27,265 bases of DNA from Macrostomum lignano (GCA_002269645.1 NIVC01004667.1:40291-67555); one strand, 5' to 3'; counted from the stretch's first letter, positions 12,501 to 21,561 are shown. Numbers and translations are program-made. Notes: generated by a model from the sequence alone, not told the origin.

Positions 12501-15500
12501 CCTCCCTTGACACTCCACCGCCTCCCCTGACACTCCACCGCCTTCTCTGACACTCCACTGCCTCCGCTACCTCCCCTGACACTCCACCGCCTCTCCTGAC
12601 ACTCCACTGCCTTCCCTGACACTCCACCGCCTCCCCTGACACTCCACTGCCTCCTCTGACACTCCACCGCCTCCCCTGACACTCCACTGCCTCCCCTGAC
12701 ACTCCACCGCCTCCCCTGACACTCCACTGCCTCCCCTGACACTCCACTGCCTTCCCTGACACTCCACCGCCTCACCTGACACTCCACCGCCTCCCCTGAC
12801 ACTCCACTGCCTCCTCTGACACTCCACCGCCTCCCCTGACACTCCACTGCCTCCCCTGACACTCCACCGCCTCCCCTGACACTCCACTGCCTCCCCTGAC
12901 ACTCCACTGCCTTCCCTGACACTCCACCGCCTCACCTGACACTCCACCGCCTCCCCTGACACTCCACTGCCTCCTCTGACACTCCACCGCCTCCCCTGAC
13001 ACTCCACCGCCTCCCCTGACACTCCACTGCCTCCCCTGACACTCCACCGCCTCCCCTGACACTCCACTGCCTCCCCTGACACTCCACTGCCTTCCCTGAC
13101 ACTCCACTGCCTCCCCTGACACTCCACTGCCTCCCCTGACACTCCACCGCCTCCCCTGACACTCCACTGCCTCCCCTGACACTCCACTGCCTCCCCTGAC
13201 ACTCCACTGCCTCCCCTGACACTTCACTACCTCCCCTGACACTTCACTGCCTCCCCTGACACTCCACTGCCTCCCCTGACACTCCACTGCCTTCCCTGAC
13301 ACTCCACCGCCTCACCTGACACTCCACCGCCTCCCCTGACACTCCACTGCCTCCTCTGACACTCCACCGCCTCCTCTGACACTCCACCGCCTCCCCTGAC
13401 ACTCCACTGCCTCCCCTGACACTCCACCGCCTCCCCTGACACTCCACCGCCTCCCCTGACACTCCACTGCCTTCCCTGACACTCCACTGCCTCCCCTGAC
13501 ACTCCACTGCCTCCCCTGACACTCCACCGCCTCCCCTGACACTCCACTGCCTCCCCTGACACTCCACTGCCTCCCCTGACACTCCACTGCCTCCCCTGAC
13601 ACTTCACTACCTCCCCTGACACTTCACTGCCTCCCTTGACACTCCACTGCCTCCCTTGACACTCCACTGCATCCCCTGACACTCCACTACCTCCCCTGAC
13701 ACTCCACTGCCTCCCTTGACACTCCACCGCCTCCCCTGACACTCCACGGCCTCACCTGACACTCCACCGCCTCCCCTGACACTCCACTGCATCCCCTGAC
13801 ACTCCACTACCTCCCCTAACACTTTACTGCCTCCCTTGACACTCCACTGCCTCCCTTGACACTCCACCGCCTCCCCTGACACTCCACCGCCTTCTCTGAC
13901 ACTCCACTGCCTCCGCTACCTCTCCTGACACTCCACTGCCTTCCCTGACACTCCACCGCCTCCCCTGACACTCCACTGCCTCCTCTGACACTCCACCGCC
14001 TCCCCTGACACTCCACTGCCTCCCCTGACACTCCACCGCCTCCCCTGACACTCCACTGCCTCCCCTGACACTCCACTGCCTTCCCTGACACTCCACCGCC
14101 TCACCTGACACTCCACCGCCTCCCCTGACACTCCACTGCCTCCTCTGACACTCCACCGCCTCCCCTGACACTCCACTGCCTCCCCTGACACTCCACCGCC
14201 TCCCCTGACACTCCACTGCCTCCCCTGACACTCCACTGCATCCCCTGACACTCCACTACCTCCCCTAACACTTTACTGCCTCCCTTGACACTCCACTGCC
14301 TCCCTTGACACTCCACCGCCTCCCCTGACACTCCACCGCCTTCTCTGACACTCCACTGCCTCCGCTACCTCCCCTGACACTCCACCGCCTCTCCTGACAC
14401 TCCACTGCCTTCCCTGACACTCCACCGCCTCCCCTGACACTCCACTGCCTCCTCTGACACTCCACCGTCTCCCCTGACACTCCACTGCCTCCCTTGACAC
14501 TCCACCGCCTCCCCTGACACTCCACTGCCTCCCCTGACACTCCACTGCCTTCCCTGACACTCCACCGCCTCACCTGACACTCCACCGCCTCCCCTGACAC
14601 TCCACTGCCTCCTCTGACACTCCACCGCCTCCCCTGACACTCCACTGCCTCCCCTGACACTCCACCGCCTCCCCTGACACTCCACTGCCTCCCCTGACAC
14701 TCCACTGCCTCCCCTGACACTCCACTGCTTTCCCTGACACTCCACAGGCACCCTTGACACTATTTTTTGACAGCTAGAGCTCTGCATGAAACCAAAGACT
14801 TTTCAAGTACATTTACCAAACGAGAAGTGAAAGCACTGCAGCGAAGGCAGAGTGATGCACCGTGCAATGTTTGCTTTTGTTTAAAGCTTGAAACGTGAAA
14901 TACTGCAAGAGAAACCAATAAAATTGCTATAGGAGCAAAAGATAGAATAATAAAAACTTTAAACTTCGAGAAAACTACTATATCGATTATTACAAGCAGT
15001 AGAAATTAAAAAAAGTATAAAATGTTTCATTAATTTAAACAAAAATAGTACTGTGATGAAATCTGGACCAACTTAGCAATGATCGATCCAATGCTCTTGG
15101 AAAAATAGAAGAACAACATGAGTGGCTTTGCTTAGACTTAGTTTTTAAAAAATTGTTTCAGATCTGCCCCAAAAAGGGCCGTTTTACTCACCAGCTGACC
15201 TTCAATCGTGTAGATTCTACGAACTTGCATTCGAAATATTGCGGACAAATCGTCTAAAACCTGTTCGAAACTTTGAACCATGCGCTTGTTCAGCAGGACA
15301 ATGTGCTTCTTGAATGGTTCGCCGTTCTGTCTAACATAAATTCGCTTGCAGTCGGCCCGCTTGAACACGGGAGCATAGGCGGCTGCGGCGGCGGCGCCCT
15401 GGTCGTCCGGCGCGGCGGCCGTGTCCGAGTTCGGGTAACTGTTCGCGTCCCGGCGTGGGCGGGCGCGAAATCGCATCGGCTGGGCCAGCGGGGACGCGGC

Positions 15501-19197: not shown

Positions 19198-21561
19198 GTG
19201 AGTCTTACTCTATCACCTGACTACAGATGTTCTGGGACTCCTGTTTGGATCCTAAAAGATCAGTGGCGAAAAATCTTAATTTTTCAGCCGGGTTCTGTGT
19301 TACCCACATCACCAATTCTACTGCCACCAAGCCAACAAGTATCAATTTAAAGCAAATAATTTCTTCATCAATTAGCAATTTATTTTGTTTTGTTTTATAC
19401 ATTTTAGGCTCAAGGTCTAACACGCGACTGGATTATGAAATTTATTGGATTAGAACAACAAGGCTGCGACTCCAACCAACGAATGGAGGTAGTCATTTCG
19501 ATTTTCTACCATTTGGTTGACGAGCTCTACGCCCGAGGCTGCAGCAAATCCGAAATTTGTATCCTCGCCAAGCTGACAGCCGAGTATTGGATAGCATCTC
19601 TTGGTAAGCACTGACAGACAGACAGACAGACAGACAGACAGACAGACAGACAGACAGACAGACAGACAGACAGACAGACAGACAGACAGACAGACAATTC
19701 TCACCCCGCCAATTCGCAGACCGCTCCCTGCAAGAGAACCTGCGCCACCTTCAGTCAATGGTTACTCCGTTGGCTCCGCGCCAAATATCTGAGCGCGCAG
19801 CCTCCATCTACCTGGAGTACACCGTGAACAGCTTCCTGCGTCATTTCGCACTCTACCGAGCCTGCCTTCAACAACCCCAGCATCAGCAGCAGAAGCAGCC
19901 ATCGATGCAGTACTCCGGTCGACGACTTCGTCGCGGCATTCTTGTCGAATCGCCGGAGCAGCCGTGCCCGCTCCGCGACGGACTCCGGCCCGAGGAGCAC
20001 CGCTACCGCTGCCAGCTGCGCGAGCTGGACACGGAGGAGCAGCTGGCCAGGGCTGCCGGAGCTGAGCGACGCCTGGGAGAGTCGGCCGAGATCGCCCAGC
20101 GACGTCGCAATCTGGAAGCGACCATGACGCGCAGTCGGTCAGATAGCGACGACGATCAAGAGGACGCTGCGATTGACGACGTGAGAATCAGTTTTATAAT
20201 CATGCTAAATCAGCTTTAGGAGTGTCGGCAGTTTTAGGAGCGGCGCCAGTTTTAGGAGTGGCGCCAGTTTTAGAAGCGGTGCCAGTTTTAGGAGCGGTGC
20301 CAGTTTTAGAAGCCGTGCCAGTTTTAGGAGCGGTGCCAGTTTTAGGAGCGGTGCCAGTTTTAGGAGCGGTGCCAGTTTTAGGAGCGCCGCCAGTTTTAGG
20401 AGTGTCGGCAGTTTTAGGAGCGGCGCCAGTTTTAGGAGTGGCGCCAGTTTTAGAAGCGGTGCCAGTTTTAGGAGCGGTGCCAGTTTTAGAAGCCGTGCCA
20501 GTTTTAGGAGCGGTGCCAGTTTTAGGAGCGGTGCCAGTTTTAGGAGCGGTGCCAGTTTTAGGAGCGCCGCCAGTTTTAGAGGCGCCAGTTTTAGGAGTTG
20601 ATAGTTGACATTTTTCCCACAAAAAATCGATTTTCAGTACCCCAACAGCCTGATCGGAGAGATTCTACAAATGAATTTGCGTCAGATGCGGCTGCGAACT
20701 CAGGACCTCACTGACAGTGCCTGCATCGATCTGGTATACAAAGCCAAGCGAACTGCACTGCCCAGGCCAGCCAGTATGGGTGAGTGCGGTTTGTGTGTGT
20801 CATTGGCGATGTTCTTGTTATACTACTGCTTGATTTGATGATTGAGTAGTGTCATTTTCAGGTCTGAAAGTTAATAGATAATTTCTTGAAGTTTTGAAGT
20901 TTGGGTTGCGCGTTTACATAAACAGAATCTTCCAAGAATTGCTGCTTACTCAGGCCTTGCTCTAAGTCTAGATTGTTTTGAGGGGTAATTTTTCTGACTC
21001 TTCGAGGGGTAATTTGTGGTATATTTATTATTCGCTGTGGGGTATTTATAATACTTTCTATGGAAAATTGTTTGTAATTTTTTCTATGGGGTATTTTTGT
21101 TCCCTCTATGAGGTATCTGTCATTTCCTCTGTGGGGTATTTCTCATTTTTTCTATAGGCTATGTCTCATTCTCCCGATGGGGCTTTTCTCATTCTTGTAT
21201 GGCAATATTTCTCCTTTTCTTTTTGGGCATTTTGCTTTATTATGGGGGATAGTCGCATTTGTTTTGGGAGGGTATTTATCTCTATATATTTTTAGCATAT
21301 TTTTGGGGAGTCTTTTATTCCTCTGGACGGTAATTTCGATTAATCCTTATGGTTCAGAATGATCCCAACCATCTCAAGTTCACTCACTGCTCTGTAAAGA
21401 AAACGATAACCTCCGCAGGCCCGCCGCCAAGGTACTCGGCCTCGACCGTTGGAGCTTCCGGGCCGGCTGGCGGGGACAGAAAGTCCAGCCGTGGCTCCAG
21501 CAGGAGCTCCGCCAAATCCAAAACTGCAGGCGACGGCAAGAAGTCAAAGGCGGCGAAATGA
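19126..21561 (+). CDS. C8orf74: C8orf74-like protein (CLAMP / C1a-32-like family, probably ciliary), 5 exons, 337 aa
   Basis: Exons 19126-19197, 19408-19603, 19720-20180, 20638-20779 and 21419-21561 total 1014 nt. All introns are GT-AG with matching phases and there is no internal stop. The motifs EVVISIFYHLVDELYARG, VNSFLRHFALY, VESPEQPCPLRDGL and SLIGEILQMNL follow the recalled order in human C8orf74. ATTAAA lies at 21564-21569. Confidence 0.75.
19408..19603 (+). CDS. C8orf74: C8orf74-like exon 2
   Basis: ttttag|GCT, reading AQGLTRDWIMKFIGLEQQGCDSNQRMEVVISIFYHLVDELYARGCSKSEICILAKLTAEYWIASL. Donor G|gtaagc (phase 1). Missed by the ORF track. Confidence 0.8.
19613..19696. repeat. (GACA)n, about 21 copies, in C8orf74-like intron 2
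   Basis: Directly visible; makes up most of a 116-bp intron. Confidence 0.97.
19720..20180 (+). CDS. C8orf74: C8orf74-like exon 3
   Basis: tcgcag|AC, reading DRSLQENLRHLQSMVTPL...FLRHFALYRACL...DAAIDD. Donor GAC|gtgaga (phase 0). Confidence 0.85.
20208..20597. repeat. 18-bp minisatellite (GCCAGTTTTAGGAGCGGT)n with a 180-bp higher-order duplication, in C8orf74-like intron 3
   Basis: 20221-20400 and 20401-20580 are identical except for the last base. Confidence 0.95.
20638..20779 (+). CDS. C8orf74: C8orf74-like exon 4
   Basis: tttcag|TAC, reading YPNSLIGEILQMNLRQMRLRTQDLTDSACIDLVYKAKRTALPRPASM. Donor G|gtgagt (phase 1). Confidence 0.82.
21419..21561 (+). CDS. C8orf74: C8orf74-like exon 5 (basic, low-complexity tail)
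   Basis: ccgcag|GC, reading GPPPRYSASTVG...GKKSKAAK followed by a stop. The phase matches exon 4. Confidence 0.78.

Follow-up and report, generated by a model that had tools for sequence, protein, structure and literature searches.

The sequence analysed here, a 27,265-nucleotide stretch of DNA from the flatworm Macrostomum lignano that we call the window, contains two genes that are arranged head-to-head and transcribed divergently: a C8orf74-like gene on the plus strand and an RP1-type DCX gene on the minus strand. An earlier note on this DNA had described such a divergent pair, and we confirm the orientation, with coordinates close to those that it gave. It had placed the pair between 15192 and 21561. 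The second of these positions is indeed the end of the C8orf74 homologue's stop codon; the first is the final base of the second RP1-type exon (exon B), and the minus-strand gene continues past it and is much larger.

The plus-strand gene (19126–21561) comprises five exons, all with AG/GT splice sites, and a single open frame of 337 amino acids; an annotated M. lignano protein, likewise of 337 residues, matches the product at 99% identity. Exon 1 (19126–19197) supplies the start codon. The gene model and alignment place the first part of a CLAMP domain in exon 2 (19408–19603) and, together with an AlphaFold model, the end of that domain, a low-complexity insert and a coiled coil in exon 3 (19720–20180). 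The gene model and alignment likewise assign a second long helix and an LPRP motif to exon 4 (20638–20779), and a GPPPRY motif, a basic Ser/Lys-rich tail and the stop codon to exon 5 (21419–21561). The intron 5' of exon 4 contains an 18-bp minisatellite (20211–20597).

An exhaustive phmmer search with this protein returned 19 matches outside M. lignano at E <= 0.001 (1.3e-9 to 3.7e-4), 18 of which are approximately 270–380 residues long (the exception, P0022, has 1,835). Thirteen of these matches carry a source name: 11 are called either ‘C8orf74 homolog’ (the NCBI name in Lingula, Littorina, Magallana, Tubulanus, Pecten, Watersipora, Lineus, Haliotis and Ptychodera) or ‘C8orf74-like’ (the NCBI name in Mya), and none is called CFAP119 or CABCOCO1, which bears out the earlier note's choice of C8orf74 over those two families. 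A 15-sequence alignment that includes the window protein is collinear over its full length, up to and including a C-terminal LPRPxxxGPPPR motif in which P285, R286, P287 and P293 are nearly invariant; all four are present in the flatworm. The window protein thus displays the hallmarks of the C8orf74 family: a length of about 300 residues, collinearity, the C-terminal motif and a basic tail. It falls short of the curated Pfam CLAMP (PF14769) threshold (17.1 versus 22.7 bits), which nine of ten scanned homologues pass, and a GF dipeptide conserved in the homologues is GC in the flatworm. By its sequence, it is a divergent member of the C8orf74 family. A vertebrate C8orf74 was not found among the sequences matched, for which word-index searches gave at least 8,000 candidates, so the connection to the human gene runs through the NCBI names of the invertebrate matches; by that route, these comparisons point to the plus-strand gene as the probable orthologue of human C8orf74.

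The structural relatives of this family lie in the central apparatus of the axoneme. Searched alone against the PDB, the window protein has no CFAP119 match, even at E <= 10. A C8orf74 family profile matches mouse CFAP119 (E 2e-14), Chlamydomonas FAP114 (E 2.4e-14, over nearly its full length) and Chlamydomonas FAP119 (E 6e-10). An AlphaFold model of the C8orf74 homologue (mean pLDDT 75) predicts a protein of roughly 300 residues in which a helical CLAMP domain is followed by two long helices. When this model was used in Foldseek, the only significant matches were chains of the Chlamydomonas C1 central pair (7SQC, 7N6G); chains 5E and 5I of 7N6G are FAP114 and FAP119. We therefore regard C8orf74 as a putative coiled-coil subunit of the axoneme, comparable to the C1a/C1e proteins FAP114, FAP119 and CFAP119. 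In the consulted parts of published mouse sperm central-apparatus models, the corresponding densities are given to CFAP119, and C8orf74 is not mentioned.

The RP1-type gene begins, on the minus strand, with exon A (16148–15766), which contains the likely start codon and the first DCX domain (Pfam DCX, 57.9 bits) and is spliced in frame, from a GTGAGA donor, to exon B (15579–15192; splice sites AG and GTGAGT), which encodes a linker and the first part of the second DCX domain (34.4 bits); each exon separately exceeds the Pfam DCX threshold. The frame of exon A is open upstream as far as 16403, so an additional upstream exon may exist. Exon B is followed by a 6.3-kb intron (8860–15191), most of it a 20-bp minisatellite (10206–14761; 228 copies, ~4.5 kb by Tandem Repeats Finder). 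A second, public M. lignano contig (L001) breaks within this same minisatellite. Exon C (8859–8652) completes the second DCX domain and adds a linker; it matches the C-terminus of the paralogue P0003 as well as Lingula and Pecten sequences, and is spliced in frame to exon D (8206–8025). Exons D and E (7160–6935) encode the first and second halves of PLAT domain 1, recognised by Pfam and, respectively, by collinearity with Pecten and by splice sites. PLAT domain 2 starts in exon F (5355–5162; Pfam, collinear with Pecten and with the paralogue L013), continues through exon G (4509–4352), which is supported by comparison with L013 and by PDB matches to the PLAT domains of polycystin-1 and Rab6IP1, and ends in exon H (4017–3806), identified by comparison with L013, where the next region begins. 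Further coding segments (3042–2917, 1792–1386 and 540–334) are marked by collinear tblastx matches to L013; they are split by repeat-rich introns and, taken alone, have no Pfam match. The gene extends beyond the start of the window.

The spliced model scores 104.9 bits for two Pfam DCX domains and 102 bits for two PLAT domains. Family HMMs place its DCX protein with RP1/RP1L1 (127 bits) ahead of DCX/DCLK (83 bits) and DCDC2 (63.5 bits), and in a neighbor-joining tree the invertebrate DCX-PLAT proteins cluster with vertebrate RP1/RP1L1 in 200 of 200 bootstraps; both results refer to the reference set of Reiner et al. 2006 (supplement 1), which is without DCDC1, DCDC5 and DCDC2B/C. The RP1-type assignment made previously is upheld by these data, which show the gene, at the level of sequence, to be a pro-orthologue of both vertebrate RP1 and RP1L1, with two N-terminal DCX domains and then PLAT repeats. 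The long C-terminal region of the vertebrate proteins, in which no domains are recognised, is not seen: two PLAT domains and conserved exons follow the DCX tandem. The Lingula, Pecten and Ptychodera orthologues are also built of DCX domains and then PLAT repeats (products of 3,077–5,757 residues). We envisage that the DCX tandem would bind axonemal microtubules, and that the PLAT repeats may contact membrane or membrane proteins.

These two genes also adjoin each other in other animals. In the brachiopod Lingula, a 3,077-residue DCX-PLAT gene lies head-to-head with C8orf74; so does a 3,833-residue gene in the scallop Pecten, where the annotated gene ends are 1.4 kb apart and the DCX-PLAT exons line up collinearly with the window's own. 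In the acorn worm Ptychodera, a hemichordate, a 5,757-residue DCX-PLAT gene adjoins C8orf74 on the same strand. Within M. lignano, contig L001 repeats the head-to-head arrangement, and only one of two DCX-PLAT paralogue types has kept its C8orf74 neighbour. Adjacency is thereby recorded in Platyhelminthes, Brachiopoda, Mollusca and Hemichordata, and the head-to-head orientation in the first three, which are spiralian. The survey of gene order that had been suggested also has its other side: a search out to 10 kb from the C8orf74 homologue found no DCX or PLAT coding sequence in Owenia, Lamellibrachia, Amphiura, Tubulanus or Watersipora (two annelids, a brittle star, a nemertean and a bryozoan), so that, of nine animal lineages sampled besides M. 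lignano, five lack the adjacency. Each of the five retains the C8orf74 gene; its neighbours include a DOCK gene in Tubulanus and a TCP1 gene in Watersipora. Nor was a DCX-PLAT neighbour of a C8orf74 homologue found in one further eukaryote from ENA. The human gene order is PRSS55-RP1L1-C8orf74-SOX7-PINX1 (PMC8027303; bioRxiv 2020.08.31.275685). Since the pair is adjacent in spiralian phyla, in a hemichordate and, according to those papers, in human, the linkage most likely predates the protostome-deuterostome split, as had been anticipated should the DNA prove to be from a protostome. We consider it highly probable that the window holds the M. lignano version of a long-standing bilaterian gene neighbourhood, with both gene identities and the ancient linkage as described.

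Why the two genes have stayed together is less clear-cut. The start codons are separated by a spacer of 2,977 bp (16149–19125); the earlier note's figure of about 2.7 kb or less holds if counting starts at 16403, the upstream limit of the open frame. A repeat search finds (AGT)79 at 16411–16648 and (TAGA)84 at 16942–17278, and then an AT-rich stretch. That note had proposed a shared bidirectional ciliary promoter, and that C8orf74 works with RP1-family proteins in the axoneme. In concrete form, this would be a compact promoter of the RFX/FoxJ1 type driving both genes, and a physical partnership of C8orf74 with RP1-type protein on axonemal microtubules. The genes do lie head-to-head, as they do in Lingula and in Pecten, where a mere 1.4 kb separates them, and each product is a member of a cilia-linked family (RP1 on one side, CLAMP and C1a proteins on the other). 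However, no X-box, under four consensus definitions, was found in the spacers of the window, contig L001, Lingula or Pecten; the window has a single canonical X-box (9786–9799), which lies in the 6.3-kb intron, and one such match is within chance expectation. The start codons are also some 3 kb apart, the same-strand pair in Ptychodera is incompatible with a shared bidirectional promoter there, and adjacency is absent from the five lineages listed above. The partnership fares no better: vertebrate RP1 acts in photoreceptor cilia, which have no central pair, whereas C8orf74's closest structural relatives are on the central pair, and its profile and predicted fold indicate a different part of the axoneme from that of RP1. 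Human RP1 and RP1L1 have been called ‘apparently retina-specific’ (bioRxiv 2020.08.31.275685), and one paper deals with human C8orf74 as a candidate for testis-restricted expression; the two human genes thus appear to belong to unrelated cell types, an outcome that the earlier note itself had named as counting against its proposal. We regard the compact promoter and the physical partnership as unlikely.

The pair might instead be a neutral relic, that is, neighbours in the bilaterian ancestor that some lineages have yet to separate, with no shared regulation or functional link. The losses of adjacency from lineages that keep C8orf74, the altered orientation in Ptychodera, the lack of a shared ciliary motif in the spacers and the different tissues described for the human genes are all in keeping with this idea. 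So is the persistence of the pair in Lingula, Pecten, Ptychodera and human, whose genomes rearrange slowly and keep many ancestral neighbour pairs. Flatworm genomes, however, are generally heavily rearranged, and yet this flatworm too has the pair head-to-head and only 3 kb apart; furthermore, the head-to-head orientation is preserved in three spiralian phyla, and just one of the two M. lignano paralogue types retains the neighbour. Neutral persistence is therefore possible, though we incline against it. A different objection is that the window's minus-strand copy might be a paralogue that is truncated or in decay; the arrangement here would then be without a full-length functional RP1-type gene. 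After PLAT domain 2, exon H has an apparent +1 frameshift at an A-run (3969–3972), and the assembled frame stops at 3936–3938, whereas the frame of L013 is continuous across the equivalent exon. Sequence alone allows an indel introduced in assembly as well as a genuine truncation, but deletion of one A restores the frame, and single-base homopolymer errors are a common assembly artefact. Moreover, all eight upstream exons have intact frames and canonical splice sites, and the downstream segments are protein-like and collinear with L013 as far as 334; decay strikes us as improbable.

We favour an explanation in which the pair, where retained, has stayed together because, in ciliated cells, both genes would be served by regulatory DNA located within or near the spacer; neither a compact bidirectional promoter nor physical contact between the proteins would be required. 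Head-to-head pairs kept across phyla are known from the microsynteny literature in cases where shared cis-regulation holds genes together. The absence of adjacency in five animal lineages means that any such constraint is weak or lineage-specific, and we put regulatory constraint as the reason for retention at something approaching an even chance. What we have is a real, old microsyntenic pair, for which any regulatory coupling between the genes is putative; the whole package of identities, linkage, proposed functions and regulatory retention we hold to be somewhat more probable than its negation.

Compared with known systems, the closest counterpart is human 8p23.1, where members of the same two gene families lie directly side by side and the DCX tandem of RP1L1 clusters with that of the flatworm gene. 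Adjacency there, part of what the earlier note had stated, agrees with the published gene orders; the human genes are presumably divergent, head-to-head, as well, at a distance of probably about 17 kb, as against 3 kb between start codons in the flatworm. Vertebrate RP1 and RP1L1 are also without PLAT repeats, which the flatworm, Lingula, Pecten and Ptychodera genes have. Repeated PLAT domains form the body of these invertebrate proteins, by Pfam, as they do in LOXHD1 and other multi-PLAT proteins, but LOXHD1 has no DCX domains. C8orf74 shares with the C1a/C1e CLAMP proteins (FAP114, FAP119, CFAP119/CCDC189) a helical CLAMP domain at the N-terminus with long helices after it, and differs from them as a separate animal family with its own C-terminal LPRPxxxGPPPR motif and basic tail. 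Finally, the pair resembles conserved metazoan microsyntenic and bidirectional pairs in its retention head-to-head across phyla, but several lineages have lost the adjacency and one has it in another orientation, and the spacing of its start codons exceeds the limit of about 1 kb that is usual between the transcription start sites of bidirectional promoters.

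The window is a stretch of eukaryotic DNA in which micro- and minisatellites abound. Its plus strand encodes a protein of 337 aa in five exons, at 19126-19197, 19408-19603, 19720-20180, 20638-20779 and 21419-21561, with canonical GT-AG boundaries at every intron. This product is 99% identical, and equal in length, to the annotated M. lignano protein BOX15_Mlig001478g2; the public contig that encodes the latter (L001, NIVC01002513.1) is collinear with the window and carries the same divergent gene with doublecortin-type (DCX) domains. Being a free-living flatworm, M. lignano belongs to the protostomes. 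When 1.84 billion representative proteins were searched exhaustively with phmmer, 19 matches outside M. lignano were obtained at E ≤ 0.001 (range 1.3e-9 to 3.7e-4), all ~270-380 aa long except for one protein of 1,835 aa (P0022), and most of them aligned over nearly their full length. The matches from Lingula, Littorina, Magallana, Tubulanus, Pecten, Watersipora, Lineus, Haliotis and Ptychodera bear the NCBI name ‘uncharacterized protein C8orf74 homolog’ and that from Mya is ‘C8orf74-like’; two others are hypothetical or unnamed proteins, six have no informative name, and none of the 19 is named CFAP119 or CABCOCO1. These relatives came from the exhaustive search: word-index searches gave two matches for the DCX query and six for the C8orf74 alignment query, and a C8orf74-like query retrieved M. 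lignano proteins only, the results being swamped by low-complexity words.

A 15-sequence alignment of the family is collinear throughout; at the C-terminus its members share an LPRPxxxGPPPR motif and, after it, a basic tail, and the flatworm protein has both features. The sole Pfam match of the latter is to CLAMP, at 17.1 bits (below the threshold of 22.7, which 9 of the 10 homologues scanned do pass). The names of the matches and the end-to-end alignment bear out the proposal in the earlier note that this gene is of the C8orf74 type: judged by its sequence, the flatworm protein belongs to the C8orf74 family as a divergent member. The searches returned no vertebrate C8orf74 sequence, and the putative orthology to the human gene is based on the names that NCBI gives to the invertebrate matches.

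We also searched the sequences of solved structures in the PDB with a family profile derived from the alignment, which gave three matches in all: mouse CFAP119 (E 2e-14, CLAMP domain only), Chlamydomonas FAP114 (E 2.4e-14 over ~230 residues) and Chlamydomonas FAP119 (E 6e-10). The family profile was needed for this purpose; phmmer with the single flatworm protein returned only a spurious match to a colicin coiled coil. An AlphaFold model of the C8orf74 homologue (mean pLDDT 75) has a helical N-terminal domain and then two long helices, and its significant Foldseek matches in the PDB are exclusively to chains of the Chlamydomonas C1 central pair, among them chains 5E and 5I of 7N6G, which are FAP114 and FAP119. 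FAP114 and FAP119 are subunits in the C1a and C1e projections (PMC6548120; PMC12297659). Published passages on the two algal proteins, those of PMC12297659 included, link them with mammalian CFAP119/CCDC189 and make no mention of C8orf74. The literature on C8orf74 itself consists of GWAS, copy-number or expression lists, in which the gene is described as uncharacterised or listed among those of 8p23.1. On the evidence of the profile matches and the predicted model, C8orf74 shares its superfamily and its predicted fold with C1a/C1e central-apparatus subunits, and the simplest reading makes it a coiled-coil component of the axoneme, of the C1a/C1e type. For a human gene without known function, this relationship and the old adjacency to an RP1-type gene (see below) supply a testable hypothesis.

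The identity of the minus-strand gene as RP1-type, which the earlier note had put forward, stands, but its extent has to be revised: the gene is far larger than was noted, with a 6.3-kb intron followed by PLAT exons. Exon A (16148-15766) encodes DCX domain 1 and is spliced in frame to exon B (15579-15192), which encodes most of DCX domain 2; the remainder of this domain lies in exon C (8859-8652), 6.3 kb beyond exon B, and the PLAT exons D to G are joined in frame to exon C. The spliced model scores 105 bits for two DCX domains and 102 bits for two PLAT domains. The alternative that DCX and PLAT exons belong to two separate genes was rejected in view of the in-frame splice from exon C into the PLAT part and of the same exon order in Pecten, where the first exons of the DCX-PLAT gene align collinearly with the exons in the window. 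An apparent lack of the intron after exon B in L001 proved to be an artefact of tblastn alignment extension. Comparison with a second DCX-PLAT paralogue of M. lignano (L013) reveals collinear conserved coding segments as far as position 334, so that the gene continues beyond the start of the window; Pfam has no matches in the ORF pieces beyond PLAT domain 2, and we deem them coding because of this comparison. Just past PLAT domain 2 the reading frame appears to shift by +1 at a run of four A (3969-3972), with an as-assembled stop at 3936-3938. Deletion of one A gives the frame of the paralogue, which is continuous and has a linker 47 nt longer; the frameshift reflects an indel of the assembly or else a genuine truncation.

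Most of the 6.3-kb intron is a minisatellite (10206-14761; 4.5 kb) of 228 copies of a 20-bp unit, CCTGACACTCCACTGCCTCC, with a strong GC skew. It appears to break assemblies, since NIVC01002513.1 ends inside it. Unusually long near-perfect satellites are present in the spacer and in introns of both genes, namely (AGT)79, (TAGA)84, (GACA)21, an 18-mer x22, a 14-mer x49 and a 10-mer x71, and such micro- and minisatellites occupy 16411-16648, 16942-17278, 19613-19696, 20211-20597, 21697-22382 and 7216-7929. A ~88-nt block with sharp edges is 96.7% identical between the window (6677-6766, minus-strand sense) and the distant paralogue in L013 (14538-14625); it occupies the same intron in both paralogues, between the PLAT1 and PLAT2 exons, the flanking exons being only ~50-70% identical at the protein level. 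The block matches neither Rfam families nor tRNAs, and the fold predicted for it lacks significance (z = -1.5); a small RNA hosted by the intron, a conserved element with a regulatory role and a repeat are all possible readings. Across the window as a whole, Rfam and ARAGORN gave no matches.

When the DCX tandem was compared with reference families by summing pairwise BLAST scores, the outcome for M. lignano was ambiguous, and we therefore turned to family HMMs and a tree. Against the tandem-DCX sequences published by Reiner et al. 2006 (supplement 1), a set that lacks DCDC1, DCDC5 and DCDC2B/C, the window protein scored 127 bits with the RP1/RP1L1 HMM, 83 with DCX/DCLK and 63.5 with DCDC2. 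This ranking was identical for all five invertebrate sequences compared (the window protein, its M. lignano paralogue P0003, P0004, and those of Lingula and Pecten), and leave-one-out controls behaved as expected. In a neighbour-joining tree of 189 columns, the same five grouped with vertebrate RP1 and RP1L1 in 200/200 bootstraps, and within this group the invertebrate clade (197/200) stood apart from the vertebrate RP1+RP1L1 clade (200/200). The invertebrate DCX-PLAT proteins show, in these domain comparisons, the pattern expected of RP1/RP1L1 pro-orthologues. DCX tandems are microtubule-binding modules, and PLAT domains attach to membranes or to membrane proteins; the DCX-PLAT protein is accordingly most simply read as an axoneme-membrane link. 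The RP1 group had been described from vertebrates only (Reiner et al. 2006), and our literature search found no paper on an architecture that combines DCX with PLAT. PLAT repeats in invertebrate relatives of the retinitis pigmentosa genes RP1 and RP1L1 bear on the origin of photoreceptor axoneme-membrane linking by RP1 proteins.

A further observation emerged from a survey of 10 kb either side of each C8orf74 homologue. The homologue adjoins a divergent DCX-PLAT gene in the brachiopod Lingula (3,077 aa) and the mollusc Pecten (3,833 aa, 1.4-kb gap), and in the hemichordate Ptychodera a DCX-PLAT gene of 5,757 aa (isoform X1, P0049) lies 6.2 kb upstream on the same strand. No DCX-PLAT gene occurs within these 10 kb in the annelids Owenia and Lamellibrachia, the brittle star Amphiura or a eukaryote from an ENA assembly; its place is taken by a DOCK gene in the nemertean Tubulanus and by a TCP1 gene in the bryozoan Watersipora. 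At the loci without the neighbour, tblastn of the flanks gave no sign of unannotated exons of the DCX or PLAT type. The other DCX-PLAT paralogue of M. lignano lacks a C8orf74 neighbour. Human RP1L1 and C8orf74 are, we presume, divergently oriented. The published human gene order is PRSS55-RP1L1-C8orf74-SOX7-PINX1 (PMC8027303), and C8orf74 is listed among the neighbours of RP1L1 (bioRxiv 2020.08.31.275685). Since it is very unlikely that this adjacency arose independently in four or five lineages (flatworm, Lingula, Pecten and Ptychodera, with human from the papers), the linkage was most likely inherited from the bilaterian ancestor, and so most likely predates the protostome-deuterostome split, as had been suggested.

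A WD40-repeat gene (~330-360 aa) lies tail-to-tail just 3' of the C8orf74 homologue in Lingula (L002, 13486-19208), Pecten (L004, 19074-25149) and Tubulanus (L008, 12546-14746), and is a second conserved neighbour. No trace of such a gene was noticed in the window's own 5.7 kb 3' of the homologue, which contains a 14-bp minisatellite and, at 24710-27250 on the minus strand, reverse transcriptase (Pfam RVT_1) fragments in several broken frames, most likely from a decayed non-LTR retrotransposon. The homologue in the ENA-assembly eukaryote (P0014) is a single intronless ORF of 915 bp, seen in two contigs (L010 and L011, 10001-10915).

The head-to-head arrangement, which is confirmed here, had also been read as pointing to a shared bidirectional ciliary promoter, and several observations speak against this: no X-box was found in the spacers of the window (16149-19125), L001, Lingula and Pecten; the start codons in the window are separated by 2,977 bp and two long microsatellites; the Ptychodera genes share a strand; and the adjacency is lost in five lineages. 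Furthermore, human RP1L1 is reported as “apparently retina-specific” (bioRxiv 2020.08.31.275685), whereas C8orf74 is treated as a candidate testis-restricted gene (PMC4278308). A physical partnership between C8orf74 and the RP1-type protein is unsupported. The position of the sole canonical X-box in the window, GTAACCATGGCAAC at 9786-9799, also speaks against the shared promoter: it is located within the 6.3-kb intron, ~0.9 kb upstream of exon C. A single site of this kind is within chance expectation, and it might mark an internal promoter or enhancer.

The tight head-to-head pair kept in the flatworm nevertheless hints at some regulatory constraint, a reading to which we tentatively give slightly less than an even chance; that the genes have stayed together by neutral persistence is possible, and we rate it below such constraint. 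A bolder combination of three claims is, taken jointly, unlikely. The bilaterian ancestor would have possessed a giant DCX-DCX-PLAT(n) protein tying the microtubules of the axoneme to the ciliary membrane; vertebrate RP1 and RP1L1 would be its descendants, their PLAT body lost or split off; and C8orf74 would be an unrecognised third animal CLAMP member of the C1a/C1e type, co-regulated with the DCX-PLAT gene in invertebrate motile ciliated cells and re-deployed to mammalian testis.

The comparisons establish the identities of the two genes and their old linkage; the remaining mechanism is what we infer from them. No major picture is changed, and we offer the pair as a solid lead for work on cilia and on the conservation of gene order. 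Two useful by-products are a pointer to the function of C8orf74 and the finding that RP1 relatives in invertebrates have an architecture with PLAT repeats. The pair itself adds one more case to the known conserved microsyntenic pairs.
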